Source of the DNA: Schmidtea polychroa
Lineage: Eukaryota
Direction: 5' to 3'
Assembly: GCA_044892525.1 (NCBI GenBank)
Contig: CM097886.1
Span: 125,240,001 to 125,304,000 of the forward strand
Length of the DNA stretch: 64,000 bases
The translations under genes and the position numbers were made by a program. Shown in pieces: positions 2,215 through 40,760 of the stretch (position 1 is the first letter of the stretch; every line of letters begins with the position of its first letter). Below the pieces are notes generated by a model. The model was not told where the DNA came from. It made no database searches and saw only the letters and a list, made by a program, of their open reading frames with translations.

Positions 2215-3217
2215 TAATAAAACTAATAATAATTAAATTAATAATAAGTAATCATCATTATCATTTGCAAATAAAATTTCAAATAACAATTCAAATCTAG
2301 ACTTGGTTCATCCAGGGACCTGAGTGCAAGTCATTTCAATTTGTAATGCTCTGGCCTTTGAAATTTGACCCGTCCTGTGCAGCATCCGCTTTTATATATT
2401 AGGATAAACAAGCTGAATAATTCATTCTAAACGAAAATGAAAACGCTTGTTATTATTTGTACTTTAATTATTTTAACATGAAATATAAATTGATGATATT
2501 TTAGGCATAATTCTACAACTGGCACTTACAGAAACTCAAGTAATTTTGTCTGTCACATCCAGTTCAACATTTCCGCATTTCATTGGAAATTCCTTTTCTA
2601 TCCAAATCCAACCTCTGATTAATGACAGCAATTTGAGTGCTGATCCGTCAGATACGATAGTGATCCGTATTGTTGATTTGAATTTTACTGAAATTCAAAA
2701 AGAATTGCTTATTTACGGAGTACAAGATTCACTAGATGAAGAAATACAAGGAACCCTCATGAACATCAAAATATGGGAAAAAAATCCTTCATCAACAGAA
2801 ATGAATATATCCATAATGTTCAAGCAAGGAGCTCACAACAAATATCTGGAAATCTTTTACTTTTCTGTTCCAAATAAACTTCAACGAAGAAAATATTTGA
2901 AGAATCTCTCCCTTGCCAAACGGTTATATCATGAACTGATTGACTTGTTTATCCCATCCGCATTGGCAATCTCGGTGCTCCCAATCAATGGTGACAGGGA
3001 GGAAATTATAGTTAATGATATGGTGATGACATCCTGCAGAGCCTTTGGTGGAATTCCACCGAATAAACCGAGATTCAAGGATCACACTCACTTAAATGTG
3101 ACTATGAGAAATTATAGTGAAAAGGCCAATGAAATCTGAATCAATTTTTGCGCATCCCTGAGTGACCATCTGACTAATTTCAGCTGCACCACTGGCAATG
3201 TTACGGAGACGTTCACA
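2200..3217 (+). repeat. ~1-kb near-identical duplication of ~14195-15175
   Basis: Near letter-for-letter match including upstream non-coding DNA (e.g. ATGCTCTGGCCTTTGAAATTTGACCCG in both); scattered substitutions only. Confidence 0.95.
2505..3217 (+). pseudogene. Ig-like module exon A, copy 1 (premature stop; 3' end runs into a gap)
   Basis: TTTTAG acceptor at 2503-2504, phase 1. Frame gives ...SCRAFGGIPPNKPRFKDH...NFSCTTGNVTETF (Cys-x3-GG-x-P ... F-x-Cys, C2-set-like). In-frame TGA at 3137-3139 where copy 2 has AGA. Confidence 0.6.
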
Positions 3218-3940
3218 NNNNNNNNNNNNNNNNNNNNNNNNNNNNNNNNNNNNNNNNNNNNNNNNNNNNNNNNNNNNNNNNNNNNNNNNNNNNNNNNNNN
3301 NNNNNNNNNNNNNNNNNNNNNNNNNNNNNNNNNNNNNNNNNNNNNNNNNNNNNNNNNNNNNNNNNNNNNNNNNNNNNNNNNNNNNNNNNNNNNNNNNNNN
3401 NNNNNNNNNNNNNNNNNNNNNNNNNNNNNNNNNNNNNNNNNNNNNNNNNNNATATGGTGGATAATGGACAAATGGTAAATATCCATTAGATTACTGACAA
3501 ATATTAAATGGCCTAATCTTACAAAAAACCTCACTTACCAGTTATAGCGAAACCTTATAGCTTGAGTTATAAAATTTGGTATTATCTTTGATGCATTTAA
3601 AATTTTTATAGTCATTGGATTGAAAATTTAAACTTTACTTTGAGATTTTTAGAAATTATTGAAAAATAATTATCAAATATATGAATCTTTTTGAGGCTTT
3701 ATTTTGCTGACATTTTCTTATTTTTCAATGGAATTTGTCAAAAATAACAAAAACCGATTTTTTTTGAGTTCGATATTCGTTGCACTGTTGCAGAAGGGTC
3801 GTTAAGGTTCTTTAATAAGTTCCTTTGATAAAAACTATTGACTGCCAAGTTTCACATTGGCGCAAGATCCAATCATTTTGTACTACTTTTAAAAGGCGGC
3901 TAAGATTACATTCTAAAGTATATAAAGTTTCTAATTCATC

Positions 3941-4379
3941 CAGGGCCGTAACAAGGGTGGTGCGAACGGTGCAGTCCACATGGCGCACATCTAAAAGGGG
4001 TGCAAAATTGGAATGTTACATTTTTTAATGTTTCCAAAAAATAACAAAATATAATTAAAAGAAATTATCAAATGGCCTGCACGAAAAAAACGACACACTA
4101 ACTAGCCTATCTTTAACATAGCTGATTGGACTGGTACATTAGCGTGCCTTCGTAGGTGTGTATTTTGAAAAATGTTAGTCCATAAAATGGGCTCTTGTCA
4201 TTATTTCAATTAACAAAAAAAATTTAAGAGCATTTCTACCTATTATAATAGCTGGAGATGAATGCATAGTTAACAACATGAATATTATAATTATTATAGT
4301 AGGCTGATTTGAATTAGGGTTTTAGGGGCGCCAGATATATGAACCGCACAGGGCGCAATAATACCTTGTTCCGGCCCTG
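3941..4379. mobile_element. hAT-family MITE (439 bp)
   Basis: TIRs CAGGGCCGTAACAAGG / CCTTGTTCCGGCCCTG (1 mismatch in 16); 8-bp TSD AATTCATC / AATTCGTC. Confidence 0.85.
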
Positions 4380-4909
4380 AATTCGTCAAACAAAAATAAA
4401 GTGCAAAATATAAAATCAATACTTTATAATTTATAATTTGTTTAATGTTTAAATAAATGTATTAAAATTGTGCTTTTATTTTATTACTTAATATATACAA
4501 TAAATAAATAAATCTAAACAACAGATATTTAAACATGAAATAATTACAATAATAATCAATCGGGAGCCCCAATAGCTTTAGTTAATTTCCTAGTAGGAGA
4601 AATGTTATTATTTGCAACATATTTGATTCCTTGAAACATGATGCCAGATCAACACGGCCGCCCTCTTGATGATTGTAAAATTGACTTTTAGAAATGATAT
4701 TGGATGAAATAGATTAAACAAAGTAATTTTTTGTATATTTTTTCGATAATGATTTCTAAATTTTAATTTAATTAATTAAAAAAACTTAATAAAATGTATA
4801 TGATTCAGGCACTACAGTTTGAATTTTATAATTTAATGCGTTAATCATAGTCAAAATATTCTGTTTTTATTTGGTATATAATTCGATCTGATCCATTCTT
4901 TCCTTCCAG

Positions 4910-5201
4910 ATCACCCGACCGCATTATATATTCAACCAATCATCAAAAAGAGAATCCGATCAAACTCAACCATAAAATGTTACACAAAAGATGGATATCC
5001 AGATCCAGATATAAACTGGCAATTGATTAAAGGTCCCCCAAATGCGGTTCGGTCTCACAAGTATTCCTGGAAATGGTGATCAAATCCACATCAATAGCAA
5101 CAGTCCGATCGGTTCAAAATGGACATTCAAATGCACAATGAAAAGCATTTTAGTAAATACCAAGAAAATCTTGAATAAAACGATTTCATTTGCCATTGCT
5201 A
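4910..5201 (+). pseudogene. Ig-like module exon B, copy 1 (one +1 frameshift)
   Basis: TTCCAG acceptor and GTAAGC donor, both phase 1; 292 nt = 97 codons + 1. HPTALYIQPIIKKRIRSNSTIKCYTKDGYPDPDINWQLIKGPPNAV, frameshift near 5050, then GLTSIPGNGDQIHINSNSPIGSKWTFKCTMKSILVNTKKILNKTISFAIA: the Cys...Trp...Cys Ig pattern. Confidence 0.65.
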
Positions 5202-6788
5202 GTAAGCTTTTGATTGGATAATATTGATAAAATCGAAATAAAGTTGATTGGTAATTTGTGGATTCTAGCATAATTATTCTGGCTCCATTAAAAATATATA
5301 AATATATAATATGCATGTCAAATTATTTATGAAAATAACAAATATCTGTTAAACCGCTTAATTAACCAATCAAATTGCAATTGTAGCTGAGGGATAAATT
5401 TATACAAAGAGCAAGGCCGTAATTAAATTGATCAATTTTGAGAAGCCTAAAAGAGCTAATTGACCTCTAATTGGACGCAGCGGGTTACTCATTTTACGAG
5501 AAATAAAGGAAAGATGAGCCAGGTTCACGAAATCTCTAAATCTGTTTTGGCACGATTGATTATGAAACTATTATTTAATTTCCCAAATATGAATGTATCC
5601 TATTACCCTTGTAAACTTTGTATTACTTAAATAGTTCGTGATTTTATGAATCGCCTTATCAAAGAAATTAATAAATCTAATTAACAAATAATACTGCTGA
5701 CACCTCGATAAAATGTTCCAATAACCTTTCAAATCTGCAAATCGAATGCTCATTTCTTCACAATAATATCTTCTCTTCCTTCTGATTACTACTTCGACTT
5801 TCCGACTATCAAGAAATCCAATTGCTTTGTGCAAGAACAAAATTGCATAAAATTGCCCAATACACCAAAGGACATAAATTACAGCATGTTTAGGCATAAA
5901 TGAAAATATAGTATAAGGCAATAATTAATTTATAGATAGAAAAAAGAAACATTTATGTGAAATAAGGACAGCATTTAAGGGGCGCTGGCATCAGTTACGG
6001 GATCCATTATAATGAGGCAGTGAAATAATTCCGGCCATAAAATTACACAGACACGGACAAATAATAAGTGAAGCAATCATTTATTACGGGATTTCTAATT
6101 ATATAAATGTGCAATTGCTTGAGTTTATCACACTGCAAATGTCCATGAATAATAGAGATGGAAAGGGGAGCAATGGAAATGAGAATTTCTTTTAATAATT
6201 TCAATTCCAAACTAGAAATAATGAAATTGATAATAGCTTACCCCAATTTGAATGATGAAGAGATGTGAATGACATATAAATATTGCAATAACCTTCCCTA
6301 TCCATTCCATAAGGGTTCCTCATGTACACAAACCGATAATTTAGTAAAACTAGCAAAATTCCACCTTCTGAAATCATTCAATTTGAAGGATTTTGTAATT
6401 ATGGTGATCTGTTATTTTATGTTATTGGTGACTTTTATGGCAAATGCGATTGGTTGATTGTATAGAATTTGCGGTCGGGAATTACTATGGGAATTTATGG
6501 GAATGCCATTTCCAGATTTGGGGATTCTTTACAATTTATCTAACTGTTGATGATGATATGATTGATGGGCAATTGGTATGATTGTCCCTAGGGACCCTTC
6601 AATGGTGAATAGCTGGCCAGTGACGATTCTCGATATTGTAAAATGCAAGCTGTAAATATTATATTTTCCTCACGTTCTTTCGATATTAATTTTCTCATGT
6701 TTCACTGACGATATTTTGTATTTATAAATTGTCAAACTATAATTGGATAACTCGCTTGATTTGTTTTAATATTACTTTTTATATTAGA

Positions 6789-9700
6789 CAGTGCTCGAAG
6801 TGGAACAAAATATGTGCCGGGATAGGCATGCTGTGGCACCCGGGATTCCAGGCTTTTATGCAGAAATTTTCAGTTGGGGGTGTTGCAAAACTTTGGGGGG
6901 TGTCCAACAAATTTTTTTTGGGGGGGGTGTCCACCCATTTAATCATAAGTTTCAGGGGGTGTACCTGTTTTAATGTGGGGGGGGTGTCAAACAATTTTGG
7001 GGGGTGGGTAAATCCCTGCGGGATTCTCATTTTTAACCAAGCAAAATGACAGAGATTTTTTGCATGTGTAAATTTGTCTGATAAATAATCGGAAATTTTG
7101 TTTCAAATATAAAGCGTCAACGTCTTACTCTGATAGTCCTTTTGGTAATAGCCCATTTTCTCACATTACCTCAAAAAAACTGCAAATTCACTTAACTTTC
7201 TACGTGCTTTTATTCAACATTTAATTACAGTAAAATATATTAAAGAACTGGTAGAACTAAATGCTGTCAAACATGTTGAGAACATATCGTCAACAGAGTG
7301 GGAATAACACTAACAAACCCTCATAACTTGCAGAGAGAGTACATTGATGTTTCGCTAACGGGATCATCACGGACAATTCGCGATAGGCAGTTCTTTTCGT
7401 CTGCATGTCTGTGGCCACTGGTTAGCCAACTTTGCACATAAGCAGAGGGCTTCCATAATCTTAATGGGGGACCCACAAGGCGAATCATCATTAGTGCAGA
7501 AGCACGCGATATGGATAAGCTTGAGCGGCAGTCAGTAACAATTAGATTCATGGCACTGAACCCACGTTCACACTCGGCAGTTGATACAGGAATGCATTCT
7601 ATTGTACGGAGAAGTGGCAGCAGTTGTTGTGAAATGCGCTTGCCACCATTTTCAATAAATTCCCGCATCCCCTGGAGAGAGCTAGCAGTGTCGATTTTGA
7701 ATCGGGTGCAAAGCGCCCGGATACTGTCATCACCGTATAAAATATCCATTGAATCCGGCCAGAAGGATGGGTATAACACTTTAAGGTGATTGTAAAGCAG
7801 CGTGTTCGTAGAATGTGCGGATGTTACGTTGCTGGAATGATGTGTTGGGAGAAGTCGCGATTCCAGATTGTCTCGTAAGGCTTGGAAAAACCGATTAGCA
7901 TTAATGAGCACATCGCATTTGCTGCCCTCGTGCAGGGTAATTCCTTTGAACGCTGGTTTTTCAGAGATTTCACACAAATGCTCTCCTCTTCCTTTTTGTA
8001 GGGACTCTAGGACAAGCAGCTCACGGTTGATGAGTTTGTGTGCCTCTGGAATGCTCATGTCCCGGCTCTGTAGAGAAAGTGAAAGGTCTGCTAGCTCTTG
8101 TAAGCCATCGTACATCACAGCTAAATTGTGCACAAAAGTGAAAGTAGATAACCGTAGAGAAAGGCCAATGTAGGTAGCCTGCTCTCGTTTATCTCTGGAT
8201 GGATCTATGGCAGCCTGTTGAAAGTGATAATAGAGAGCTGGATAATTTTCCCATACTGCTTTTATTGTCCGCACGCTTGATGCCACCCAAAGTGTACTTA
8301 ATATTCGTCCAATCGAAAGCAGTTGCTGTCCAAGTGAATTTGCTACATCGTGCAATTCCCGTTGATTTTTAGGTGAGGCATGATACAAACTGTACAGTTT
8401 ATCCATAAAACAACGGAAATTGTTTACTCCACAAACCTCTTCTACAGTATCTCCGACTCCCAATTCTAAACGGTGTGCCGCACGTGCCAGATAACAACGT
8501 GGGGGAATTTCCTCACAATAAGTGCACCAACTCCAGCGCGACGTCCCAACATAACTGAAGCGCCATCACAGCAAAAGCCAATCCAATTTTCAGTGAGATA
8601 AGCTTCACCAATACCGTGCTTCTCCAAAGAAACTAGAAGATCTTGAAATATAACTTGGGATGTCGTTCCATTCAATTCAATTAAATCCAGGAAGACAGTA
8701 TTGACCTCATGGTGCAAGACGCAGCGAATGTAAATTATCAACGTAGCTTTTTGGCTAAGTGAGGTCGATTCATCAATGAGGATAGATATCTTGGCATTCT
8801 GACTAATGATTTCCTCCAACATCCTTTTACGCATCTCTTTTGCAATGTGGTCAATTATATTGGCGCATGCATGATCGCTGTGGAGAATCCTTCCCATGTC
8901 TATTCCATTGAGCCGTTGCAAGTCGATTTCCATCTCCATGTCCGAAAAAGGCCTGTTTAACTTGGCCTGTTTATATGCCGTTCGGAAAACTATTTCAGTA
9001 GATGCCTCATAAGCTTTACAATGAATATTTGCCAGATTTTCCATAATCGCAGATTTCTGAGTATTCAATATCATACATGCTGTCTTATGTGCTGAGCTAT
9101 TCAAGTGATCAAGCATCTTTTTGCGGAGAGACTGTTGCTGCTTTGCAAGAGTGTCACCATAGTGTGTAACATTTGCCGACATCCATTCCTCTGACATTTT
9201 GACGCCACGACTTTTATGCGGACCAAGCAATTTCACCTTGTGACACGTGGAACATCCTAAATTCTTAGCAGAAACAATCAGCCAATCATATTTGCTTTTG
9301 TATTTCAGCCAGGTTTCCACTGTCCAACAATCAGGTATAGATGGAGAATCACGTTGCACTGTCTCAGAGTCATTGGGGATAATGGTGATTGACGATGACA
9401 CACTAGAAGTAGATGGAGAATCACTTCGTTGCATTTTCAGAGCCTTCGGCTTAAAAAAATCATCAATCCGTTTCACTCGTTTAAGAGACATGAGTAACTC
9501 AGACAAAAAGCTCACAAGCAATAGTGTCAATAGAGAATGTGAGTGGACAGTCCAAATGTGTGAGATAAGAATAGAGGGATAGAAAGAGCTAGACTATGTG
9601 GTCGTGATTATGAGTTGCTATTAATTTAATTGGTCCATTTCATAGACACAAAATACGTAATAACACAACCTTTGTGTAAGCTACGCAGTGCCCGTGAAAA

Positions 9701-10246
9701 GAAACTCATGCCTACACTTTCACACACACACCTTTAATACATCAAAACTCATACTATATACAGTGGATAAGAAGTACGATAAAGGCATTGAAGCGGTCCT
9801 ATCTCTTACATATTGTGATTGTCAATATGTGCATGTGTATGTATATCTGCGTAGCACATATATGTTTTCTTATCACGTTAATTATAACAGCTCTCTGCAT
9901 GTGAAATCATGCACACATTATATATAGAGGGGGTAGCAGTATAAATAACTCAACAAACAACTTGCTGGTTTAACTAAAATAAATAAGAGAATATACCTAC
10001 CTATCCATTACTGCTGCTTGGGAAATTCTTAATTGAATAGAGAATAGAGAATAAAGAATATATATATACATACATATATGGATGTATTATGTGTGACCTT
10101 AATTGCAGTATTTGTGTGCCTATAAAATGAAATAAGTACCGGGATAAACCTATAGATTATATGAAATGAAGTGCCGGGATGCAATTCCGCCTACATAATC
10201 AATGCCGGGATAATATCCCGGCTATCCCGCCTCACTTCGAGCACTG
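6789..10246 (-). mobile_element. Near-intact hAT DNA transposon (3458 bp)
   Basis: Perfect 14-bp TIR CAGTGCTCGAAGTG (6789-6802, 10233-10246); perfect 8-bp TSD ATATTAGA (6781-6788, 10247-10254); GCCGGGAT-type subterminal repeats at both ends; internal transposase. Confidence 0.97.
7321..9530 (-). pseudogene. hAT transposase (ZNF862/KIAA1586-like) split by a 1-nt deletion
   Basis: Motifs ILIDEST, CCDGASVM and IPVSTAECERGFSAMN (dimerization domain). Adding one base between 8483 and 8484 restores WHCAAHRLELGVGD and fuses the two ORFs. Confidence 0.92.
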
Positions 10247-12699
10247 ATATTAGAGAATCCGATGGGAAATTGCGGAGAGAAATGCTTGACTTCTAAGATT
10301 TCTGATATTGGGGAATCGGTGGAGGAGAACGGGAGACTGAACGAGGATATCAGATGGGTATTAGATCAGGTGATGGATCAAATGAAGCTAATGAAAGAAG
10401 CAACAAGAAACATCCAGAAGATTGAATAGCAGCATTGAACAGGTGAACATTGCTTTGAAACATGATTCAGTCACATATGCAAATTATCACCATATACCAA
10501 TTATCAAAGTCCTCTATTTCCGTCAATATCTTCTTTATCTGTAATTTTGGATTCAAATGCAATTGGTTATCGGGAGTTCTGACATAAGCTAAGGTTTATA
10601 AATCCCGAAATAATCCAAGCTAAAATTGACATGAAATACAAATACAAAATAATTACACTGGAACATTTGATACTAATTACAGGGGGACATCTGACATGGA
10701 TTCGTATCTGTTCACTGAGTATTATGGATATCCCCAACGGATCAGTTTCAAAATCACTTGCAATCTCCTCTCCTACAAATATCTGCCTTAATTGCCAACT
10801 GATTATATCATTTATTTGTGTCATTAAAACAAAATATTAGACATTCAAACTTGTTGCGGGAATCCTAACAGAAATGTGATTGGTCGCACGCTCAATTTGT
10901 CCGTATTTGTGAATAGAAAAGCCTTTATTTCATAATATTATATCCTTGATGTAATAAATACAATATTTACCATTCCCCAGTGACACTCGCTCCCCCAGTT
11001 ATCCTCCTGAGGAAATCCTCATCAAAATTCATGATAATAAATTGAGAATCCTAATTGATATAGGGATAGATTTGAATCAAACTAATTGAGTTATTGAGTT
11101 AATTGAGTTATTGCAAAGCATAATGGAAGGGGCGTCGGTAAAAGGAAGTTTGATCTGCATTCTATTGAAATGACAAAATGCCTGCGATAATAGGGGAAAT
11201 CCGCTATTTTGGAGTCTAAAGTTCTACCTAGTTGCATCCTAATTTTTGTTGTATGAAAATCAATACGAAATATTACAGAAACTCTTGATAGAGACGAAGC
11301 TGAAAATTTGTGTTGAGTATAATTATATTTTTGATCATTTGTCAAAATGAAAATAAATCAAATATTAGCAGTTAAAGTAAAAATTAAAAATTCATCTTAA
11401 AATATGAAAAATAGATATCTAAATAAACAAGGTATGTAATATTTGAAACTTAGAGAAAAGCGATTTTTTGTTAAGAACTTCACGGGGAGGCTGAATTGTT
11501 TAAATGGAGTATTGGTTACCCAGCATTATTGCTAATCTCCCCCTGTTGTAATATTCCCATCCAATTCTTCTCGTCACAACCTCCTACCTCCGATGTGGTT
11601 ATCAGATTTCTCTTTGTCCTTAGTGTCATTATGGCTATAGCTAAAGTTCAGAAATCTCCATAGAGTCACAACTAATATTGACAGAAAATACAAATGCTGA
11701 ATATGTACAATGCCTAATTGGTCGTATAAAGGGCCACCCCAGTAACCACCCCAGTAGTCACTTTACCACTATTTCGCAATCTAAAATATTTTCTATCTGA
11801 ATTTTTGAATCTCAACAACCACCTTTTCAAACCTAAAAAATCTTTTGTTGTAACTCTCAATTAATTTTAGCAAGCCAAATTTCTGAAATATTTCTTACAA
11901 TTTCTCATACGGTTAAAAGTTTTATGATTTCCTCAGATTTTTATTTCGCTGCAGAATTATCAGTTTACTCACAATTTTCGTTTGCTACATTTAGAATTTA
12001 ATTACCGGAATATTTTTTCGTGTAACCTTTCGCAACAGCTATTGGAGATTTTTATACATTCGTTTATCATTAATTCGGAACCTTTGGAAACGATTGAATT
12101 TGATTGGTAATTGTTATTTGTTAAGTTTATTTCTTGGTGTATGTCACAACATTTATAATAATTAAAATCTTGATATTAAATTTTCGTTCTTCCTCATTCA
12201 AATTTAGAATTATAAAATTTTACGATTTTGTATTTTTATGCAGGTCTCAGTTGCTTTCTCACAGGCCATTTCACGATGCATCCTTACTAACAGCAAGACG
12301 ATTTCAGCTATGGCTCGATAGAGGGATCTTGTAGCGGTCATTACTTGTTGTTTTATTGTAGGATTTGTAAAAATGTACATTACACCGTCAAAGATAAGTG
12401 CAAATTTTCTGCAAAGATCGAAGTAAATCTCCACAGAAGCTAGGCATATTGCATATGTAGTTTTCATTTGTAAAATCGAACTACTAATAAAATGATAATG
12501 TCTGAAAATTTCAAGCCAAAGAGCGTAAAACGCCCAATTGTAAAGTAATCTCTACATAATTACTTGTAATTTGTAACAGGATACGACCACCTTAAGATTA
12601 ACATGATTACCGTAATCATCATTATTAGCATTGAAAAATTTGTTATATTATTACGTAATGTTAATATATTCATAGTAGGGTTCGCAAAAGACCGAGTTT

Positions 12700-13630: not shown

Positions 13631-14459
13631 AATGAACTATGACAAAAAGTGCAAATTTTAAGAAAAATAATATGGAAAAATTATAAAAAATAATTATCAA
13701 AAAATTTATATACATTTGTATTTTTATATTAATAATTTTTGACATTGAGATGACGTCTCGTGGTTTATGAGGTGAAGTCTTGCAAGCTCACATGCCTGAT
13801 GTATGAGAATAAATAATTGAAAAGAATATAGTGAAAGATTTTGGGCCTGATGAGGAAAACTGATCCAACGGAGAATTTTAGGATTTACAAACAGTNNNNN
13901 NNNNNNNNNNNNNNNNNNNNNNNNNNNNNNNNNNNNNNNNNNNNNNNNNNNNNNNNNNNNNNNNNNNNNNNNNNNNNNNNNNNNNNNNNNNNNNNNNNNN
14001 NNNNNNNNNNNNNNNNNNNNNNNNNNNNNNNNNNNNNNNNNNNNNNNNNNNNNNNNNNNNNNNNNNNNNNNNNNNNNNNNNNNNNNNNNNNNNNNNNNNN
14101 NNNNNNNNNNNNNNNNNNNNNNNNNNNNNNNNNNNNNNNNNNNNNNNNNNNNNNNNNNNNNNNNNNNNNNNNNNNNNNNNNNNNNNNNNNNNNATAATAA
14201 TAAGTCATCATCATTATCATTTTCTAAATGAAATTTCAAATAAAAATTTATGTCTAGACTTTGTTCATCCAGGGAGCTGAGTAAATCATTTCAATTTGTG
14301 ATGCTCTGGCCTTTGAAATTTGACCCGTTCTGCGCAGCATCCGCTTTTATATATTAGGATAAACAATCTGAATAATTCATTCTAAACGAAAATGAAAACG
14401 CTTGTTATTATTTGTACTTTAATTATTTTAACCTGAAATATAAATTGATAATATTTTAG

Positions 14460-15185
14460 GCATAATTCTACAACTGGCACTTACAGAAACTCAAGTAATT
14501 TTGTCTGTCACATCCAGTTCAACATTTCCGCATTTCATTGGAAATTCCTTTTCTATCCAAATCCAACCTCTGATTAATGACAGCAATTTGAGTGCTGATC
14601 CGTCAGATACGATGGTGATCCGTATTGTTGATTTGAATTTTACTGAAATTCAAAAAGAATTGCTTATTTATGGAGTACAAGATTCACTAGATGAAGAAAT
14701 ACAAGGAACCCTCATGAACATCAAAATATGGTGAAAAAATCCTTCATCAACAGAAATGAATATATCCATAATGTTCAAGCGAGGAGCTCACAACAAATAT
14801 TTGGAAATCTTTTATTTTTCTGCTCCCAATAAATTTCAACGAAGAAAATATTTGAAGAATCTCTCCCTTGCCAAACGGTTATATCATGAACTGATTGACT
14901 TGTTTGTCCCATCCGCATTGGCAATCTCGGTGCTCCCAATTAATGTTGACAGAAAGGAAATTATAATTAATGATATGGTGATGACATCCTGCAGAGCCTT
15001 TGGTGGAATTCCACCGAATAAACCGAGATTCAAGGATCACACTCACTTAAATGTGACGACGAGAAATTATAGTGAAAAGGCCAATGAAATCAGAATCAAT
15101 TTTTGCGCATCCCTGAGTGACCATCTGACTAATTTCAGCTGCACCACTGGCAATGTTACGGAGACGTTCACAATTCACATTCATC
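14460..15185 (+). pseudogene. Ig-like module exon A, copy 2 (726 nt, phase 1-1, premature stop)
   Basis: TTTTAG acceptor at 14458-14459, GTAAAT donor at 15186; 242 codons. TGA at 14732-14734 where copy 1 has GAA. Confidence 0.65.
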
Positions 15186-15222
15186 GTAAATTATTTTTAT
15201 TATTATTTATTATTATTATTAA

Positions 15223-15259
<37 letters not shown>

Positions 15260-15357: not shown

Positions 15358-15490
15358 ATCACCCGCCCCAAGTGATACCATCAAGCCAATGCCAAATAGA
15401 ATAATGAAACCGAATTCCACAATTACTTGTGCCTCCGCTGATGGATATGCCGGTCCCACATTACGTTGGGAAATCTCATTGCTATATTAT
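15358..15490 (+). pseudogene. Ig-like module exon B, copy 2 (early frameshift; 3' extent unclear)
   Basis: TTCAG|ATCACCCG start as in copy 1; after a frameshift near 15378 reads IKPMPNRIMKPNSTITCASADGYAGPTLRWEISL (Cys-x-x-x-DG...W). Confidence 0.6.
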
Positions 15491-17091
15491 AATATATGTA
15501 CGCAAAGAAACGCAAATACAACTAAACTTAAATTGCCCGACAAAATCTAAATGAAAGATCAAATACGTCATTAAAAGTTACATGGAAAATCCTCAATCNN
15601 NNNNNNNNNNNNNNNNNNNNNNNNNNNNNNNNNNNNNNNNNNNNNNNNNNNNNNNNNNNNNNNNNNNNNNNNNNNNNNNNNNNNNNNNNNNNNNNNNNNN
15701 NNNNNNNNNNNNNNNNNNNNNNNNNNNNNNNNNNNNNNNNNNNNNNNNNNNNNNNNNNNNNNNNNNNNNNNNNNNNNNNNNNNNNNNNNNNNNNNNNNNN
15801 NNNNTAATTAAAGAACGAAGGAAAAGTTTTTATTATAGAAAATCCCCAACTAAGTATATTAAAATATAACATCGACCGTTTAACAGTATTCCTTTGGCTA
15901 GGAATCGTATTAATCACAATTAAATAAAAATAATAATAATTAAACAAATTTAATAAATAATAATAGTATTAATACTGTATCATAAAGTAATTTTTAAAAA
16001 AAACATTTTGTTTAATCATGCAATAATCAATTTAATTAAAAAAATTTTTTATAAAATTAATATATAAAATTAATCTAAATTTAACAAACAACATCATCCC
16101 AAATATTCAATATACAAGTTCAATTATTTAAATACATTCAAAATCCCTGTAGACTGGAAACTTTGAATATTAATTACAATATTTAAAGATCTAATTAACA
16201 ACGCCTTGCACATTAGTCGTTCCAGTAATTGCTCAAACTCTTCGACAAGATTTTAAAATCAGCAATACTTATATTTTTACTGGTACACTTCATAAAATGA
16301 TCACTAATATGGGTCAATCTATTCCGTCAGCAATGTTCAAGAACTCGACTGTAGAGATGCCGTGGGATTACACCCATTTCATGAAAATTGATACATGAGT
16401 TCTGAACACAGACCAATTGGAGTTGGAGACTTATTAGTGAACATGCTACCAACCTTGCAAGACGTTGAAACAATCCTAAATATAGTCCTATCTATATATT
16501 TAAGGATCTGATGCTTGAATTCTCTGAAACGTTCAGAATAAGGTAATACCAACACATTTTTGATCAGTGTGGATTTCTTTCACCTTCCGAACTTGATAAC
16601 ACAGATGATCATTGGTGTACGAAATTGAACAAAATACGAAGGAGGGCAGCAGAAATTATGGGCAATAATGGAATAATTGTGCTAACGTATAAAGGTTTTG
16701 AGTTAGATTATGATGAATATTTATTTGATTGTGGCTGTGTAACACGGAAGCTTGATGAGGATGGAATCTTGACGAATCAAGAACCGTTGCAAAATTATAA
16801 TAATGAGATAATTGCAATAAAACAATTGGAATCAGAGAGAGTAGAAAAAAGTTTTAAAATTGAATTACCAGATTTGGAAGGTGAGATAATGAATAATTAT
16901 GACGAGGTGTGTGATGAGCAAAAAATAGGAAAAAGATGAAATAAAACATGAAGCTGAGAAAATTCCTGATGAAAACGAGATAAAGGCTGAAGTAAAAAAT
17001 GAGGCGATTAATAGAGCATTAGAAGAAAAACAACGCAAAAGTTTGTACGAAATGAGGTGTGAAATGATACAATGGGGAAATTAAACAGTAG

Positions 17092-17838
17092 AAATATTTT
17101 GTCACATACGGAAATTTACAAGTAAAGCTCACATACAGTCTTTCAATATATTATTACGAGAAACTCCTTCATGATGATGGAACATATACGAATAATCAGT
17201 GGTCAAAAGTAAAAGAGCAGGATGAGATGATATATCTTAACAATGAAACCAATCGAGTCCAAATAGAAATCAACGATAACAAAATAACTGTTTCATGCAA
17301 AATCAGAAATCAAAAAAGAGTAAATATTTTTGTAAATAATAAGATTCAGGTGATACTGGATGAATTATCAAACAAGAGCAGAACTCAGTTCTCAATACTC
17401 AAGAAACGAACGCACATCAGGAGAATTCGCAATAAAAATCCAATATTACAAGCTAAAAGTGAACCCAGAATCACCTTCATTGGAAATAAACTGATCCATC
17501 TGTTTAATAATAACTTCTCAAAAAATGTAAATAATGATCACAACATAAAATTATCACTTAATTCTTCATTGTTAAAAAACGAAAGTCAATTTGCAAATTA
17601 TGCTAAAAACTCATCTTTTCATAATCCTATTGATACGATTTTCATCTGCATAATCATAGCAATCCCAAGTGGTATCTTATTCATCTACATTGTCGTCAGT
17701 TCAAAAACAAAAAGAAATAACAATAATCTTCATCCTTCACGGTATTCAAGACCACAGACAATATTGGGGTTGGAAACATTGGTACTGTTTTATTGCATGT
17801 TAGTGGGAGTAGAGTATTATTTCTTTAATATCTTTTAG
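17092..17838 (+). CDS. Candidate terminal exon of a type I membrane protein (Ig-like segment + TM + short tail)
   Basis: Open frame from 17092 with ...NNQWSKV...KITVSCKIRN..., then hydrophobic TIFICIIIAIPSGILFIYIVVSS followed by basic KTKR. Lies downstream of the A/B exons on the same strand. Intactness uncertain. Confidence 0.4.
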   Translation, partial: KYFVTYGNLQVKLTYSLSIYYYEKLLHDDGTYTNNQWSKVKEQDEMIYLNNETNRVQIEINDNKITVSCKIRNQKRVNIFVNNKIQVILDELSNKSRTQFSILKKRTHIRRIRNKNPILQAKSEPRITFIGNKLIHLFNNNFSKNVNNDHNIKLSLNSSLLKNESQFANYAKNSSFHNPIDTIFICIIIAIPSGILFIYIVVSSKTKRNNNNLHPSRYSRPQTILGLETLVLFYCMLVGVEYYFFNIF

Positions 17839-18524
17839 TGAGTGTGTTCTGAGAAACAATTGATAATCCTTCATTATAAAATTTATTGTTAGAAATTTTG
17901 AAATTATTTTTACTGTAATTTGATTGGTCGAATAATCATACGGCTGAGGGGGAAATTTTGGGTATAAAAATGGTGGTTGTTTTCAAAATTTTGACTTGGA
18001 AAAACATTCAAAACCACAAAAGAAAACATTCAATCCAATGCAACAAATCAACGAACCCACAAAATTGTATGCTCATTATTATAGAGAAAAAGGAGTCGTA
18101 CCGGAAAAATCAATATAATTGAAGAAATTCTAAAAATCCCATTTTGGGCCAGGAGTGGAAAAGAAGAAATGTGAATATGTCTTATAGAAATGGAGTATAG
18201 ATTAAACATGAAGCTTTAAAAGCTGTTGTTGAGGAAAAAGGAAGAAGATTGGGAAGCCCATGTTTATAAGAGAACTGTGGAAATCTTTGAAAACGATGGA
18301 ACAATTTATAATATAATGGCAAATAACGTCCTGGATGAAAAAACTGAGAGCGGCTAACGGTGTCACTTGGATAATTTTAGAATGTCGAGTGCAAGCTTCA
18401 ACAATACCAATGATGATGAAAATTCTATCAAATGAGGAAGAAAAGAATCTGATGCCAATTACTGAGGATATGCTTAAGCACAGAAAATAATTTTTGCGAA
18501 AGAAAATTACTTCAGAAGAAATTA

Positions 18525-18750
18525 GAAGAAATAATGTATTTATGGACGCGGAATACGGAATGAACAAGGAAAGCAAAATGGTTCTGTTATCCATTTGTTT
18601 GATTGAGTACAACGGGAAAATAATTTAAAACTTCTTAATAAACTCAAGAGAAAAGCTGAAATATTATGTCACGCTGATCCATGGAGTAGATCCGTGGAGA
18701 CTTTTGCACTTTTTGCTACCCACTAAATTGCTGTACCAACGTCAGTTGTG
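18525..18750 (+). pseudogene. DEDDh 3'-5' exonuclease-like relic (REX/ISG20-like N-terminal half)
   Basis: VFMDAEYG...LLSICLIEYNGKII*NFLINSREKLKYYVTLIHGVDP matches the Exo I D-x-E motif and downstream pattern of RNA exonucleases; one in-frame stop. Confidence 0.45.
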
Positions 18751-21339: not shown

Positions 21340-21655
21340 TCTCAAATCCGTTGCGAAATTTCCAAACTTCATTGGATATGCAATCAAGATCCGATAGTAG
21401 CAAGTTGACTATGATCCGTCATAGAGGAGGGACATACGAATTGTTGATCGCAATTTTACGGAGATTTTGGCGGAATTTCAAAGTATAATCCAGGATTTGA
21501 GGATCACGCTCAGTTAAATTTGACGAAGAGAGAATATAATGAAACGGTCAATGAAATCAGAATGATTTTGCGCGCATTTCTTAGTAACTATATGAGTAAT
21601 TTCAACTTCACCGCGGGAAATTTGACAGAAATGTTTATCGCTAGGTATGACATTT
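21340..21655 (+). pseudogene. Ig-like module exon A, copy 3 (diverged, internally deleted)
   Basis: YDPS*RRDIRIVDRNFTE is joined almost directly to DFGGISKYNPGFEDHAQLNLTKREYNETVNEIRMILRAFLSNYMSNFNFTAGNLTEMF; both parts align to copies 1 and 2. Confidence 0.6.
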
Positions 21656-24029: not shown

Positions 24030-24907
24030 AAAGGTGAAAAACATTATTATTACTAGAAAATGCACCGTCCCACCCATCTATAGAATGTTTGAATCAGATC
24101 GATGAAATGTTTAAGGTAAAATTTCTTCCACCAAATGCCACGCCTGTAATACAACCGATGGATCAGGGTGTAATAGAAACATTCAAACGCTTGTATAGAA
24201 AACAGATGCTTCGACGATTATTGCTATCAGGCGAAAATAATGAAGAAACAGTTATCCGTTTTAATAAGAAAATAAATTTGAAAGACTGTTGCTACATGGC
24301 AGCAGAAAGTTGTAATTCCTTAGAAGTGTCAACGTAGAAAAAATCATGGAACAAAATTTTGAAAAGACCATTAGTATGTTCCAATAACGCAGTAACAAGT
24401 GATTTTCAAGACATTACGGGAGCAATAGCACAACTTTCAATATGTGGTGAATGTGACGAAGGTGTCACCGAGTGGTTAAATTGCGATGCGAACGATCCTT
24501 GATTCCAAATTTTGTATGATGAAGAAATAATTAAAGAATTATCAGTCTCAGTGGAACCAGATGAAGAAGATGATAAGGAAATTTGCAAGGGGATATCGGT
24601 CCTACACATTCTGAAGCTTTTCAGTGCTTAGATGTGGTTTGAGAGCCAAAAACAATATAAATCAAGTGAACTTGTGTCTTAAAAGTATTCGCGATTTGGC
24701 AGCTTCAAATAGAACCGCTAACTTTAAGCAAAAATCCATATTTGAATTTCTAAATAAAGAATAATTTATTATTGAAGATATATGTAAATGTAGACAAATG
24801 AAAATTATTCATATTGAATATATTCGTATTTCCCTGTCAATTATGATTTTTTCGATTATCCGGACTACCTTCATCCCCAATTAGTCCGGATAATCAAGGT
24901 TCTACTG
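24030..24907 (+). mobile_element. Tigger/pogo-type DNA transposon relic (3' half with TIR)
   Basis: DDE_1 motifs ENAPSHP and FLPPNATPVIQPMDQGVIETFKRLYRK; terminus ...GATAATCAAGGTTCTACTG followed by TA at 24908-24909. Confidence 0.85.
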
Positions 24908-34340: not shown

Positions 34341-34386
<46 letters not shown>

Positions 34387-35374: not shown

Positions 35375-37769
35375 TTTTCTCTTGCCCCCTTCTTGCCCCC
35401 TCCAATATTTGTTTGAAAAAAGTAGATATTAAAAATAAAACTTTATTTAAAAATTCCAAAATATATTTCTAATAAACGTGTACATAAAACATACATATTT
35501 TTTCAACAAATTGAAAGAAATTGATCGTTCACTTTATTTAGTGTGATCCTTGTGCTTGATGCAATTTAGCGAGTTTATTAATTTCGGGCTTCAATGTTGT
35601 TAGCGACATACGCAGATCGCCTCTTTGCACAACATCAAGACGGTTATGTGCTTTTGAGAGGAGATGCATAACTCGACTAAATCCAGATGCAACCAAATAA
35701 GATAGATTCTCCCATAACTGTGGAAATATACTGGCTATTTCATTGCTTATCCAGAAATTATCTTTATTTAATTTAAATCTAACACTTTGCAAGTCCACAA
35801 GACTTGCTTACAGTTCGATATTGATATCAGCTGCATTCACACTAAATGGATCAATTGCCCAATCTGAAATATTTAAATTAATAATATCAATAAATCGAAC
35901 TCGCATATCCTCACGAAGCTGTTTCAAATGATTAATATATATTTCCAAATCATCATCTTGTATTTCATTTAAAATTGTAGCCAATGATGAAAATTGCGCT
36001 AACTCACGATGACCAATATTCGTTATGAAAAGATTCAGCTTTCCCAAAAAAGCATTCATTACTTTTTTACACGTTATGAGATTACAATTTTTCCCTTGTA
36101 ACTGTTTGTTTAATAAATTAAGTTTTTCAAAGATATCTGATAAATAAAATATGTCACATTTTACACTAACCAACTCCACTCCGAATTCTGCATCTTTCAT
36201 AAAAGATATAATACTATTCCAAAGCACAACAAACCGTTTTAAACTATTACCCTTCGATAGCCACCGAACTTCTGTGTGCAATAGGAGGCGCTCAAAGCCT
36301 TCCTCATTTTCTTCACATAGTTGTCGGAAGAGGCGATCCCGAAGTGGACTTGATTTAATGAAATTTATTGTTTTTATTGCAATATTAAGAGACTCATGTA
36401 AACGCCCTCTTAACTTTTTTGTAACCAAATGTTGACTATGAATTACGCAATGTATACAAAAAATATTTGGCACATCATTCTTCAGATATGTGATAAATCC
36501 TCGATATTTACCAGCCATTGAAACAGCCCCATCGGTTGCGCATGCTAGTATATTTTCAAGCGGGATATTTTTCTCCATAAAAATTTTTTTAACTTCTTGA
36601 TATATCTTTTCACCTTTTGTATCAGTTTTAAGTTTTCTGGCAAAGAGCATTTCTTCAATAAACTTGTCATTATCTTGAAATCTAACATACGCCATTAATA
36701 GAGCTTCACTTTCACGTATAGAAGATTCATCTAATTGCAGGGCAAACTTCTTTACTTGCAAATGAGCAATTAGTTGTTTTTCCACATCATCTGCCATTTC
36801 ATCGATACCCCTCGATACTGAAGAATTGCTCAAAGGAATGACTTGAGTAATTGCATTTGGGTTCTGATTCATGACCCTTGAAATAACAATAGATACTGAT
36901 GGCAAAATCAAAGATTCAGCAATAGTATATTCTCTTTCAACTTTTGCAATTAACTGCGAAATCTCATAAGTAATTAATCCATTGTCAATCATCGATGACT
37001 TTTCATTAAATACTTGTAAAATTGTTTTTCTTGGTCGAAAACCATCTCGAAGTTTTTTAAAAAATTGAACTGGCTTGCCTTTTTTGTCTTCATGTGTAGT
37101 TTCTAAATGTTTTCGTAATTTGCATGGTCGCATACTCTCGTTTGATAATACAGCCATACACAATAAACACATACGCGAGATAATCGATGGAATATTGTCG
37201 ACATTTTTTCTTAGTCTCACTATATCATGGTTATCTAAAAAGATATTTTTATTTTAATAAAATTTGCTATTAAAGTGATTTAAAAAATCTCATTGGTCTT
37301 GAATTACATATACATACATATGTAATAAGAACATTACAATAAAGATAAAATCGCAAATTTATAAAAACTTAAAATTTGTAGAAAATTACAATTCACTGTC
37401 GAAAGATCGAATTGTTCCACGTCTCCACTCAATACGTGTCAAAACCCGACTAACAATAACAAGAATGCGCTTTGCGAACACATGCAAGATTCAGCATGTC
37501 TTTGTTTACGCAATGCAAACGCACAGTCAAAAGAAACAAATATATTTAATATTATATTACCTGTATGTATTAGAATTATTATATTTAATTATATGCAATG
37601 GTGTGATAACTAAATCTTTCTGGCTCAATTTTTCAATATAATTTAAATATAATATTTTATTAATTTGTTTTAGCTGTGGGCCCCCTAGAGTTTGCTATGG
37701 CTCCCCAAAAGTTTATTTTTGCCCCGTGGCCCCCAAGGGGGCCATATGGCTCCAGGTTGAGAATCGCTA
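35375..37769 (-). mobile_element. Buster/Charlie-type hAT transposon (one TIR lost)
   Basis: Terminus TAGCGATTCTCAACC at 37769 flanked by CTCTAAGC (Buster-type NNNTANNN site); GGGGCCA/GGGGCAA subterminal repeats; transposase inside. Confidence 0.85.
35538..37220 (-). pseudogene. hAT Buster transposase (ZBED5/ZBED8/SCAND3-like) with premature stop
   Basis: FALQLDES, CATDGAVSM, HCVIHSQHL, LLLHTEVRWLSKG. TAA at 35808-35810 continues in frame to ...HQAQGSH*. The dimerization motif is shortened (LWENLSYLVASGFS). Confidence 0.92.
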
Positions 37770-37899: not shown

Positions 37900-39250
37900 T
37901 GCCTTCACCTTTGGAAGTCAATCATCGTCGAGCATTCGGTTTGGTATTGATTTCACCCTTGCGGTTCAAACCTGAAACCTCATATCTGATATTATTGTTC
38001 ATAGGATAATACGATAGGCTTTCTAAGGGGTTAATGCTGTAATGTTTATTAACAAATTACGATAAATTATTATTCCTAAATTCAGTTTATTTAAATCATA
38101 TACTAAATAATTATAAAATGCATACGAGTGTTCCCTTTCCAACATACAGCTTCTTCATCTGCGATTGATATCTGATGATATGCTTAAGCCATATCAAGTT
38201 TTGTAGAATATTTGCTTCCTGTTAAGTTATCTAGAATGTTTTGAATTCTATGGAGTTGGTACTTGTCTGGTATTGTGATACTGTTGAGTAGCCGGAAATT
38301 ACCAAACAGTCCATGGGTCATCATATTTATTTACAACCACTAGTGGTGATGCCCAATTGCTGTTGCTTGCTTGAATAATGTTCTCTTTCAGTAATCTGTC
38401 AAACTCCATCTTGCCTGCCTGTATTCGTTCTCCGAATAGTTTGCGGTATTTTTGAGAGATTGCTTGTTCATCTGAAATTATTCTAAGTTGAACACTAACA
38501 AATTTTTCTTTTAATCAAGTTTGGATAACGGGTCCAATTTTTCTGCAGGAATATTATTAATTTCGAAGTTTTTGCCATAGTCTTGAGCAAATTTCAATGT
38601 CGAGGAATTTGAAATAAGCTTGTTTTTGCAATTGACTAATAGATTGTAGTGAGATAAGAAATCCTCACCGATAATCGGTTTGCTAATATTTACAACGGCA
38701 AATATCCATTTGAAAGGCAGTTGGAAACCTTCAATTTCAAATGTGATTTCTTTGTTTCCATAATAATTTATAACTGAATTATTGGCGCTGACGAGTGTCC
38801 GGTTTCTTCCCAAGGGTCTATTAGCTTCGAACATTGTTGCAGGTAAAACACTCGCGTCAACACCTGAACCGATTAAAAAATTATAGATGGTGTTTGATAC
38901 CATTTCTGGTATGGTGGATGTCTAGTTGTTGTTCGTATTATAGACTGATGTAATTTCGAAGGTTCCAGTCTCCGAACATACTGGAACCTTTACTCGTTTC
39001 CCTGTGACGTCAGATCTTTTTTCAAACTACAAAGGGGCTGATATTTTCTTGCCAAAGTTCCTGTGATAAAAACAAAGGGATTTCAGTGACTGATTTTCTA
39101 TCATTGATGCTTCTCAGAGTTGTGATTTCCTCGTGACTGCAGATTCCTAGAGTTCTCAATAACCTGAATGTTGTTTTTCTTTGGTCTATTAATTTTTGCT
39201 TCAAAAATGATTTTGATTTTTGTAAATTATCGCTTCTCAATAATTTCATA
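37900..39250 (-). mobile_element. Decayed Ty3/gypsy LTR retrotransposon (gag end, protease, RT fragment)
   Basis: Gag-like YHRNFGKK...APCS; retropepsin FLIGSGVDASVLP...IIGEDFLSHYNLLV; RT fragments SNSNWASPLVVV and YSTKLDMA*AYHQI. Confidence 0.85.
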
Positions 39251-39605: not shown

Positions 39606-39745
39606 TTCCCTGCAGTGCAGCTGAAATTTTTCAGATGGTCAGTGAGAGATGAGCTCAAATTCATTCTGATCTCATTGGCGGTTTCATTATATTTTCTTTC
39701 CGTCACATTTAAGTGAACGTGATTGTCGAATCTCGGTTTATCAAT
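39606..39745 (-). pseudogene. Ig-like module exon A, copy 5 (3' fragment)
   Basis: Minus strand DKPRFDNHVHLNVTERKYNETANEIRMNLSSSLTDHLKNFSCTAGK aligns with copies 1 and 2. Confidence 0.7.
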
Positions 39746-39789
39746 TTAACGAACAATGGATTATTTGTTATCAGAAGGTAAATTATTTT

Positions 39790-40012
39790 CTTTGCTACCT
39801 ATACTATCGTGGTTTTCATTGAGTATTTGAATTTCCATTTTGATTCGATTGGATCTTTTGAATCGTTGTAAATTTGAGATTCGTTTCTACCACTATGCGT
39901 TTGATGGAGCTTCAATGAGTTGGAAACTTACTGAAGACTGAGGATATATATCTTGGCCATAGCATTCGATCGTTCATTTGTATCTGGCTTATGGGAATCT
40001 TGGAGTGGTGAT
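39790..40012 (-). pseudogene. Ig-like module exon B, copy 3 (frameshifted)
   Basis: TTTTAG|ATCAC start as in other B exons; IECYGQDIYPQSSVSFQLIEAPSNA and PIESKWKFKYSMKTT match KCYTKDGYPDPDINWQLIKGPPNA and PIGSKWTFKCTMKS. Confidence 0.6.
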
Positions 40013-40235
40013 CTAAAATGAAGTATAACACTACTTTTACTAACCTTTGATATTATTATTATATTTAAAAAANNNNNNNNNNNNNNNNNNNNNNNNNNNN
40101 NNNNNNNNNNNNNNNNNNNNNNNNNNNNNNNNNNNNNNNNNNNNNNNNNNNNNNNNNNNNNNNNNNNNNNNNNNNNNNNNNNNNNNNNNNNNNNNNNNNN
40201 NNNNNNNNNNNNNNNNNNNNNNNNNNNNNNNNNNN

Positions 40236-40760
40236 CGTATGAATATAAATTGTGTTTTTGCGTGAAATTTCCGCTGATGCATCTGAAATTAGTTAGATGG
40301 CTACTTAAAGATGCTAACAAATTCATTCTGATCTCGTTGGCAGTTTCATTATAAATTCTCCGTCACATTTAACTGAACATGAACCTCGAATCTTAGTTTA
40401 TACTTTGGAATTCCAACAAAGGCCCGGCCGGATATCATCACTATATCATTTCTTATTATTTTGTTTCTGTCAACAATAATTGGGAACACGGAGCAATAAG
40501 TTCATGAAATAATTGTTTGGTAAAGGAGAGATCCTATAAATATTTTCTCTATTAAAATTTATTGAGAGCAGAAAAGTAAAATAATTCTAAATCTTTGTTA
40601 TGAACCCCTCACTTTAATATCATGGATATATCGATTTTCGTAGACATTCTCCTTCCATTTGTTTTTGTCCATTTTTAAATCTATTGTAAATGCATGTATT
40701 TTGTTGTAAAATCCACCTAACGTTTCTAAGTCTGTCTGAATCCTGTGTTCTTAGAACAAA
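40236..40760 (-). pseudogene. Ig-like module exon A, copy 4 (frameshifted)
   Basis: DNA homology to 14700-15185; reads AFVGIPKYKLRFEVHVQLNVT and YNETANEIRMNLLASLSSHLTNFRCISGNF; ends at the gap edge where the donor is expected. Confidence 0.7.

Follow-up and report, generated by a model that had tools for sequence, protein, structure and literature searches.

The FREPs of Biomphalaria are a secreted multigene family of many paralogues in which an N-terminal part of one or two immunoglobulin superfamily (IgSF) domains is followed by a fibrinogen C-terminus (PMC7588048), and the Alr genes of Hydractinia form a large, clustered IgSF family with pseudogenes, whose transmembrane products, several of them with ITAM or ITIM tails, carry a V-like membrane-distal domain that lacks canonical sequence motifs and was seen by predicted structure (PMC9546547). 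In the planarian Schmidtea mediterranea, a large MATH/TRAF expansion has been described (PMC6109357), and the giant gypsy-like Burro retroelements of the same species carry MATH_TRAF_C modules (PMC6431247). Full-text literature searches returned no published description of proteins that combine immunoglobulin (Ig) and MATH domains. Here we analyse a stretch of 64,000 nucleotides from Schmidtea polychroa (NCBI GenBank assembly GCA_044892525.1, contig CM097886.1, positions 125,240,001 to 125,304,000 of the forward strand; hereafter the window, with positions counted from its first letter), in which the region from 2.4 to 40.8 kb very probably holds four decayed copies of a lineage-specific, tandemly arranged Ig–coiled coil–MATH gene family that has intact members downstream. 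The family is an undescribed variant of the IgSF multigene families, and the window itself holds only relics of it.

Each of these systems resembles the Ig–MATH family in part. As with FREPs, the family would be a secreted multigene family of many paralogues that joins an N-terminal IgSF part to a C-terminus of another, recognition-type kind, a likeness that is a functional analogy only; the C-terminus is MATH-like in place of fibrinogen, five Ig domains stand where FREPs have one or two, and for the Ig–MATH family there is no evidence of an immune response or of somatic diversification. With Alr the family shares a large, clustered IgSF organisation that includes pseudogenes, and a distal V-like domain that has no canonical motifs and is recognised through predicted structure, but it has no transmembrane (TM) segment and ends in a coiled coil and a MATH-like domain. 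The MATH fold has been strongly multiplied in one lineage here as in S. mediterranea, where the proteins have been read as cytoplasmic TRAFs or as modules of retroelement polyproteins (PMC6109357, PMC6431247); unlike those, the members of the Ig–MATH family have introns, are clustered and not dispersed, begin with a signal peptide and Ig domains, and carry the MATH-like domain in their last exon.

The assembly behind the window comprises 781 Mb, with four very large contigs, and the window has a GC content of 31%, non-depleted CpG and eight runs of N. An earlier note on this DNA had proposed an array of duplicated Ig-like exon pairs, A and B, in phase 1-1, and both self-BLAST of the window and direct reading of the splice sites confirm that such repeated exons exist. 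Positions 2239-3217 and 14195-15172 are 96.1% identical across 980 nt, so that the near-identity of copies 1 and 2 stands as the note had described it, as does the strong divergence of the others: weaker and far more diverged A copies lie at 20173-20662 and 21314-21636 (+) and at 40671-40239 and 39742-39606 (-), and two of the motifs that it had singled out, GGIPPNKPRF and GGISKYNPGF, are both found in window copies. B-type exons lie at 4910-5201 and 15358-15598 (+) and at 39990-39802 (-), and A lies upstream of B in three places, namely copies 1, 2 and 4, again as claimed. Exon A measures 726 nt where it is complete (14460-15185), between an acceptor AG at 14458-14459 and a donor GT at 15186-15187, and an intact B exon measures 291 nt from AG to GT; both are in phase 1-1.

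A 22-nt exon with an ATG, reading MKTLVII, lies 46 nt upstream of exon A in copy 1 (A1) and in copy 2 (A2), and when it is spliced in phase 1 to the start of A the two together read as a typical complete signal peptide. Each A thus has its own ATG and signal-peptide exon, which makes these units separate gene copies and not alternative exons. This bears directly on the possibility that the A/B units are alternative or mutually exclusive splicing cassettes of one large gene, in the manner of Dscam, a suggestion that the earlier note had also floated. The phase 1-1 symmetry of the exons and their tandem arrangement on one strand at 2.5-21.6 kb are what one would expect of cassettes, but besides the ATG exon and upstream region that accompany each A, a terminal exon with a stop belongs to copy 1 itself, copy 4 runs on the other strand, stop codons interrupt the copies, and each intact paralogue is a complete gene on its own, so that a cassette array has almost no claim to be believed.

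In copy 1 (2437-10791), direct reading places exon 1, with the ATG and the first seven signal-peptide codons, at 2437-2458 (+), followed by a 46-nt GT-AG intron at 2459-2504; the same exon and intron are present in the intact paralogue L004. Exon A of this copy, encoding two Ig-like domains, occupies 2505-3217 (+) and is 95.5% identical to that of the intact gene L049, with an in-frame TGA at 3137-3139. A B3-type Ig exon of 292 nt (against 291 nt in intact genes) lies at 4910-5201 (+), as placed by alignment with the B3 exon of L049 and by a collinearity map, and a decayed terminal exon for the coiled coil and MATH-like domain lies at 10254-10791 (+), found by tblastn with the terminal exons of L049 and L047. 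Copy 2 has exon 1 at 14392-14413 (+), again with a 46-nt intron after it, the full exon A at 14460-15185 (+) with an in-frame TGA at 14732-14734, both by direct reading, and a chimeric B exon at 15358-15598 (+), by reading and the collinearity map. Copy 3 consists of two decayed parts, 3a at 20173-20662 (+), which is heavily decayed and extends from the upstream region through exon 1 into the 5′ part of exon A at 68-84% identity piecewise, and 3b at 21314-21636 (+), with pieces of exon A that include the C-terminal Ig part with GGISKYNPGF and contain stops. Copy 4 (-) is represented by an exon A remnant at 40239-40671, with 70% DNA identity to an intact copy and 12 stops in the matched stretch, by a B1-type exon remnant with stops and deletions at 39802-39990 and, downstream of that remnant, by an extra exon A fragment with only the second Ig domain at 39606-39742.

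What these copies derive from is seen elsewhere on the same contig. A genome search gave at least 44 matches to A, at least 51 to B and 25 to the terminal exon, almost all on the contig of the window and in clusters at 109, 116.8, 123-127.6 and 181-187 Mb. Apparently intact paralogues lie at 127.3-127.6 Mb, 2.0-2.3 Mb downstream of the window, and in two of them, L049 and L047 (127.31-127.50 Mb), every exon is open and collinear, from the ATG exon through A, B1, B2 and B3 to a terminal exon that ends in a stop. An intact gene would accordingly comprise the 22-nt ATG exon, an intron of about 46 nt, exon A of 726 nt, B1 to B3 of 291 nt each and a single terminal exon. Exon A would complete a cleavable signal peptide and then encode two Ig domains, the first V-like and lacking the canonical disulfide, the second of C2/I type and provided with a Cys pair; B1, B2 and B3 would add one C2-set Ig domain each; and the terminal exon would encode a CxxxC motif, a coiled coil with one to six repeats of about 20 residues and a MATH/TRAF-C-fold β-sandwich of about 125 residues. 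An independent database gene model, P0001 (72% identical), joins A-B1-B2-B3 straight to the coiled-coil exon, and a distant complete member, P0002 (648 aa), starts with a signal peptide and A, has a single B, and goes on to a long coiled coil and a C-terminal domain; the database gene models of the family are uncharacterised.

Matches beyond the family were limited to generic Ig proteins, FCRL5 among them, and the neighbours of the family in a protein atlas are likewise generic Ig proteins only. A protein homology search, run within limits on query length and words and with records of the species' own genome left out, gave nothing for exon A and only itself for P0001. The family is apparently lineage-specific and confined to flatworms, and its tandem clusters on one contig, in which intact and decayed copies are mixed, are a birth-and-death pattern, as the earlier note had anticipated. 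A divergent member, P0005 (263 aa), in which exon A is read through a short intron into a B exon, was found on contigs of about 1 kb (L075 and L076; ERZ27257134, SRR5195110) of a public metagenome-type assembly, and the DNA of a related animal was therefore present in that sample.

Against the intact paralogues, all four window copies are dead relics, that is, pseudogenes. Since they keep introns, they are unprocessed duplicates, and their disabling lesions include stops, frameshifts, missing or chimeric exons and scrambled fragments. Copy 1 is collinear with an intact paralogue yet multiply damaged: a 1-nt insertion near 5061 shifts the frame of its B3 exon in pairwise alignment with B3 of L049, the B1 and B2 exons are absent from the collinearity map against the intact gene, and its terminal exon (60% identity; only 80.6% identical to that of L049) carries three TGA codons, one TAG and a frameshift. 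In copy 2, the B exon, which has frameshifts and stops, begins with the acceptor and first bases of B1 and continues as a B2-like sequence at 78% identity; a terminal exon was not found. Of copies 3 and 4, scrambled fragments full of stops are left.

Part of the damage is obscured by N runs. The run at 3218-3451 covers the last 13 nt expected of exon A1 together with its donor site, and to the right of it there is no homology to the intact gene before 4815, so continuity there cannot be assumed. Another run, at 15599-15804, leaves about the first 241 of the 291 nucleotides in the B exon of copy 2. The runs at 13896-14193, 21767-22167 and 40073-40235 fall in non-coding positions, either upstream of the gene or in the A-B intron, where other copies hold AT-rich microsatellites. 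One could suppose, then, that copies 1 and 2 are functional and that their stops and frameshifts are assembly or sequencing errors in a gap-rich region: many N runs lie in the region of these two copies, A1 and A2 have one stop each, and A2 has a ratio of nonsynonymous to synonymous substitution (dN/dS, or ω) of 0.23-0.48 against intact copies. This is highly improbable: copy 1 has several independent lesions, namely the TGA in A, the lack of B1 and B2, the extra nucleotide in B3 and the four stops and frameshift of the terminal exon, and copy 2 has the TGA, the chimeric and frameshifted B exon and no terminal exon; moreover, dN/dS for A1 reaches 0.47-0.98 against the paralogues at 127 Mb (0.34 against L009).

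The Ig nature of A and B, which the earlier note had read from the spacing of conserved residues, is upheld by predicted structure for A and by profile matches for B. An AlphaFold2 model of exon A built from 19 family sequences has two β domains, with a mean predicted local distance difference test score (pLDDT) of 90.7 and a predicted template modelling score of 0.78. Residues 12-149 superpose on V domains (T-cell receptor V, Z 8.3), and residues 148-241 on an Ig domain of RPTPsigma of the I/C2 type (Z 10.3, root-mean-square deviation (rmsd) 2.0 over 85 residues). The pair as a whole superposes on the V-set plus C2/I-set pairs of adhesion and recognition proteins, on D1-D2 of nectin-4 (Z 10.0, rmsd 4.7 over 188 residues), on MAG (Z 10.5, rmsd 11.9 over 184) and on SYG-1, Neph1 and PD-L1 D1-D2 (Z in the range 9-10.5), and Foldseek returns Fab chains and PD-L1 at E about 1e-6. 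Among AlphaFold-DB clusters, exon A is matched best by A0A068XZH1 (676 aa, E 1.4e-9). The likeness to the nectin, SYG-1/IRRE and PD-L1 pairs is one of fold, with 9-13% identity and no detectable sequence homology, and the family differs from them in that domain 1 of A has no disulfide and in its overall architecture. In B-exon regions of family members, Pfam finds C2-set_2 in P0001 (32.1 bits, cut-off 21) and Ig_3 in P0003 (36.6 bits, cut-off 30); the window's own broken B fragment scores 19.7 bits, under the cut-off, and a Pfam scan of the window's A reading frames gave nothing significant. Among the sequence signs, C177 and C227 are invariant in domain 2 of A and a Cys pair is present in the B exons, domain 1 of A has no such pair, and the core Trp of A domain 2 is replaced by Phe in the window's subfamily. 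We conclude that exons A and B encode Ig folds, as judged from the structural model in the one case and from Pfam profiles in the other.

The terminal exon brings in a different fold. Its model consists of a helix at residues 9-74 (65 residues) and a β-sandwich at residues 79-201 (pLDDT 69.7), and among 48,161 chains compared with VIA-align the β-sandwich has as its first four matches two TRAF-like domains of USP7 (Z 9.5, rmsd 3.8 over 121 residues, and Z 9.1, rmsd 3.1 over 115), TRAF6 (Z 8.1, rmsd 3.6 over 114) and TRAF1 (Z 7.7, rmsd 3.6 over 117). Foldseek returns the MATH domains of SPOP, USP7 and TRAF1 at E 5e-5 to 3e-4, and the C-terminus of the distant member P0002 matches Pfam MATH_2 from end to end at E 1.5e-4 and 22.4 bits, below the cut-off of 32. 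On these models the terminal exon resembles MATH, an eight-stranded antiparallel β-sandwich, at the level of the fold, and for the window's subfamily membership at the level of sequence is not established.

The helix precedes the β-sandwich directly, as the coiled coil of TRAF proteins does; the best structural matches of the family's C-terminus are the USP7 TRAF-like domain, TRAF6, TRAF1 and TRAF3, and like that of TRAFs its coiled coil is predicted to self-associate in parallel. When three copies of the terminal-exon protein were modelled together, the complex score was 0.47 against 0.01 for the best control, a value that was reached by 21 of 30 proteins solved as one-chain pairs and by none of 23 single chains, in a calibration that was made with two copies and is rough here. 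The complex runs share at least 92% of their contacts, the pLDDT of the partner is at least 63, and the predicted contacts run in register along residues 7-76 with heptad spacing. This prediction supports self-association through a parallel coiled coil but falls short of showing a trimer. The coiled coil varies among paralogues, with one to six tandem copies of a unit of about 20 residues, EQGKEQMRLMGEKQQETSRRLNSSI (L059 988-1950; L050-L065), so that the predicted length of the stalk differs from gene to gene. A CxxxC motif precedes it, and the MATH part has nearly invariant Cys residues. In contrast to TRAFs, the family has neither a RING nor TRAF zinc fingers; a Pfam scan of the conceptual proteins found no zinc-finger region, the N-terminus being a signal peptide with Ig domains (five in the full architecture), and the predicted location of the protein is extracellular.

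Where the product resides is a question that the two halves of the protein appear to answer differently. A MATH/TRAF-C domain with a preceding coiled coil is typically a cytoplasmic signalling module, and one may therefore suppose that the family encodes type I membrane receptors with an Ig ectodomain, a small TM exon that escaped detection and a cytoplasmic TRAF-like coiled coil and MATH domain, in an arrangement like that of butyrophilins (IgV-IgC-TM-coiled coil-B30.2). Butyrophilin and proteins with B30.2 also appear, among V+C Ig pairs, in the fold searches made with exon A, and since the gene models are conceptual and drawn from genomic DNA, a small exon might have been missed. The conceptual proteins, however, have no hydrophobic stretch past the signal peptide: hydrophobicity peaks only at the signal peptide and in an internal β-strand region, and the signal peptide alone exceeds the β-strand level. 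The end of B3 and the start of the terminal exon match in phase 1, and P0001 joins the two directly. No TM segment or exon was found in the intact family genes, in either the conceptual proteins or the last intron, and the two subfamilies that were compared have no conserved island in common over the final 1.3-1.5 kb upstream of the terminal exon. A hydrophobic reading frame in the last intron (window 6269-6454; L049 3882-3697) was considered as a TM exon and rejected, as it has no usable in-frame splice sites and is not conserved between the subfamilies. The 17-18 N-x-S/T sequons, which include an LNSS that recurs in the coiled-coil repeats and an NIT in the MATH part, and the conserved Cys of the coiled coil and MATH part fit passage through the secretory pathway.

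Given the lack of a TM segment, the sequons, the conserved Cys and the lack of an island in the last intron, the product is read as secreted, and a membrane receptor is unlikely. The surface receptor of the earlier note finds no support, and the exon that it had proposed for the membrane anchor belongs to a retroelement. The product of an intact gene would be a secreted, N-glycosylated protein that self-associates by way of a parallel coiled coil, probably as trimers in the manner of TRAF domains, and the assembly may present several Ig arms along with clustered MATH heads. A MATH domain outside the cell has a precedent in meprin α and β, whose extracellular MAM-MATH-AM region includes a MATH domain that takes part in oligomerisation. 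The comparison with meprins goes no further than that, as the Ig family has neither an astacin protease nor a MAM domain and has Ig domains and a coiled coil instead.

The paralogues differ in a way that separates the two halves of the protein. For exon A, pairwise dN/dS among intact copies is 0.22-0.68, site-class models give ω 0.37, and a likelihood-ratio test (LRT) of M2a over M1a yields 0, with no positive class; for the coiled coil, ω is 0.25 and the LRT 0.1. For the MATH-like part, in contrast, pairwise dN/dS is 0.9-2.0 with a median of 1.25, ω under the site-class models is 1.3, and M2a improves on M1a with an LRT of 58 (P 2e-13), which falls to 24 once all columns up to four away from a gap are removed and to 27 without two doubtful copies. 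The changes concentrate in a few codons between invariant blocks, and the recurrent selected sites are residues 88, 89, 147, 156, 183, 186 and 187 of the L050 terminal exon. It is the site-class test alone that reaches significance, since for the MATH part as a whole parsimony counting gives ω 1.19 at P 0.26. Diversifying selection on the whole of exon A was rejected by both dN/dS and the site-class test, and where the earlier note had seen diversifying Ig modules the diversification lies in the C-terminal MATH-like domain. Purifying selection acts on the Ig exon A and on the coiled coil, and the MATH-like domain shows site-specific positive selection. The paralogues would thus differ mainly at a few positively selected sites and in the indel-rich loops of the MATH head, which may be the part that determines specificity.

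Several points weigh against this picture of a functional Ig–coiled coil–MATH family with relics in the window. A signal peptide is hard to square with a MATH/TRAF domain, a module that usually works in the cytoplasm. No Pfam MATH match was obtained in the terminal exons of the window's subfamily, hhalign found no link between the terminal-exon profile and the MATH region of P0002, and the model of the C-terminal part, from 11 sequences, is of only moderate confidence. The exon structures and putative transcripts of the intact genes are conceptual, read from genomic DNA, and the window's stop codons are read from the letters of the assembly only. Among sequencing runs on record as RNA, none was found to hold exon A2; the best shares of its words were 0.47 in runs of unknown kind and 0.29 in runs guessed to be RNA, values that say nothing firm on expression. 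The selection tests are our own implementation, with a fixed topology and relative branch lengths and with 7-9 paralogues, and the signal in the MATH part could be inflated by gene conversion, by recombination or by misalignment that persists around indels.

If the intact genes are expressed, they unite a signal peptide and five Ig domains with a coiled coil and a MATH domain, an arrangement for which we found no description, and a module best known from intracellular TRAF signalling would have been moved outside the cell. The pattern of selection is distinctive: conserved Ig domains and a conserved coiled coil next to a few selected MATH sites would mark the MATH head as a surface for binding, whether in an arms race or in a recognition code. 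Some planarian MATH-fold domains may then not be TRAF adaptors, and the reported "TRAF expansion" of planarians would be refined to that extent. A bolder proposal, which we put forward with considerable doubt, is that the intact paralogues form an undescribed humoral recognition system of flatworms, made of secreted trimers that are stabilised by disulfides, bear 15 Ig domains and are capped by three MATH domains, in which a few positively selected loop residues and loops of variable length in the cap give each paralogue its own ligand specificity and the window's pseudogenes record rapid turnover. By analogy, a TRAF domain would there face outward and serve as the fibrinogen head does in FREPs or ficolins. 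A role of the family in immunity or in self/non-self recognition is speculation.

Mobile elements are abundant around these genes, and it may be asked whether the unit itself is their cargo, spread by transposition, given that the window is rich in transposons and that the giant gypsy-like elements of planarians carry MATH_TRAF_C modules (PMC6431247). The copies nevertheless have introns with canonical splice sites and are nearly confined to a few clusters on one contig, dN/dS of exon A and of the coiled coil lies well below 1, and the terminal exon matches only members of the family in the genome (25 matches), so that the odds of a transposed cargo are minute. A match of the A/B unit to a transposon reading frame, which the earlier note had named as a possible refutation, did not arise; the A/B unit is not a transposon ORF (open reading frame).

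A complete-looking hAT DNA transposon of 3458 bp occupies 6789-10246 (-) and sits exactly at the splice acceptor of the terminal exon of copy 1. It is delimited by an 8-bp target-site duplication, ATATTAGA, and by 14-bp terminal inverted repeats, CAGTGCTCGAAGTG, and its transposase, recognised by Dimer_Tnp_hAT at 24.8 bits, is split by a single stop into ORFs at 8466-9530 and 7321-8463 (-). A second hAT-like ORF, of 470 aa with an 86-aa piece and no Pfam match, lies at 35538-37220 (-), and ORFs like it lie in introns of intact paralogues, for example at 4586-3365 of L048. A pogo/Tigger-type DDE_1 transposase fragment is present at 24089-24337 (+; 46.5 bits).

The candidate exon with an Ig domain, a TM segment and a basic tail that the earlier note had placed at 17092-17838 corresponds to an ORF at 17227-17838 (+), which does have a hydrophobic stretch and a basic tail, but which repeat matches place outside the Ig family, in a dispersed retroelement: it is the C-terminal part, transmembrane anchor and basic tail included, of an env-like ORF. 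It has at least 151 matches genome-wide, on all large contigs, often adjoining open frames of up to 2327 aa, and a Pfam scan found no Ig signal in it. Better-preserved copies (L038-L042) have an ORF of 450-564 aa with an N-terminal hydrophobic stretch and a C-terminal anchor, of which 17227-17838 is the C-terminal end. The multi-ORF retroelement family concerned (window 16000-18700; loci L036-L046) has a second conserved, exonuclease-like ORF after the env-like one. Next to copy 4, a 130-aa ORF at 38511-38903 (-) with a faint resemblance to retroviral aspartyl proteases (E 0.05-0.2) is probably another retroelement remnant.

Farther along the window, two ORFs at 44036-45555 (+) match DNA_pol_B_2, the organellar or viral type B DNA polymerase, at 49 bits, which suggests a Polinton/Maverick-like or similar element. 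Open frames at 52627-54059 (-), broken by an N run, give a weak hint of an Anp1-type glycosyltransferase (17.6 bits, below the cut-off) and are possibly exons of a host glycosyltransferase gene. Finally, a 452-aa open frame at 57367-58725 (-) has an N-terminal RING finger (zf-RING_2, 32 bits) and is possibly an ordinary host gene.

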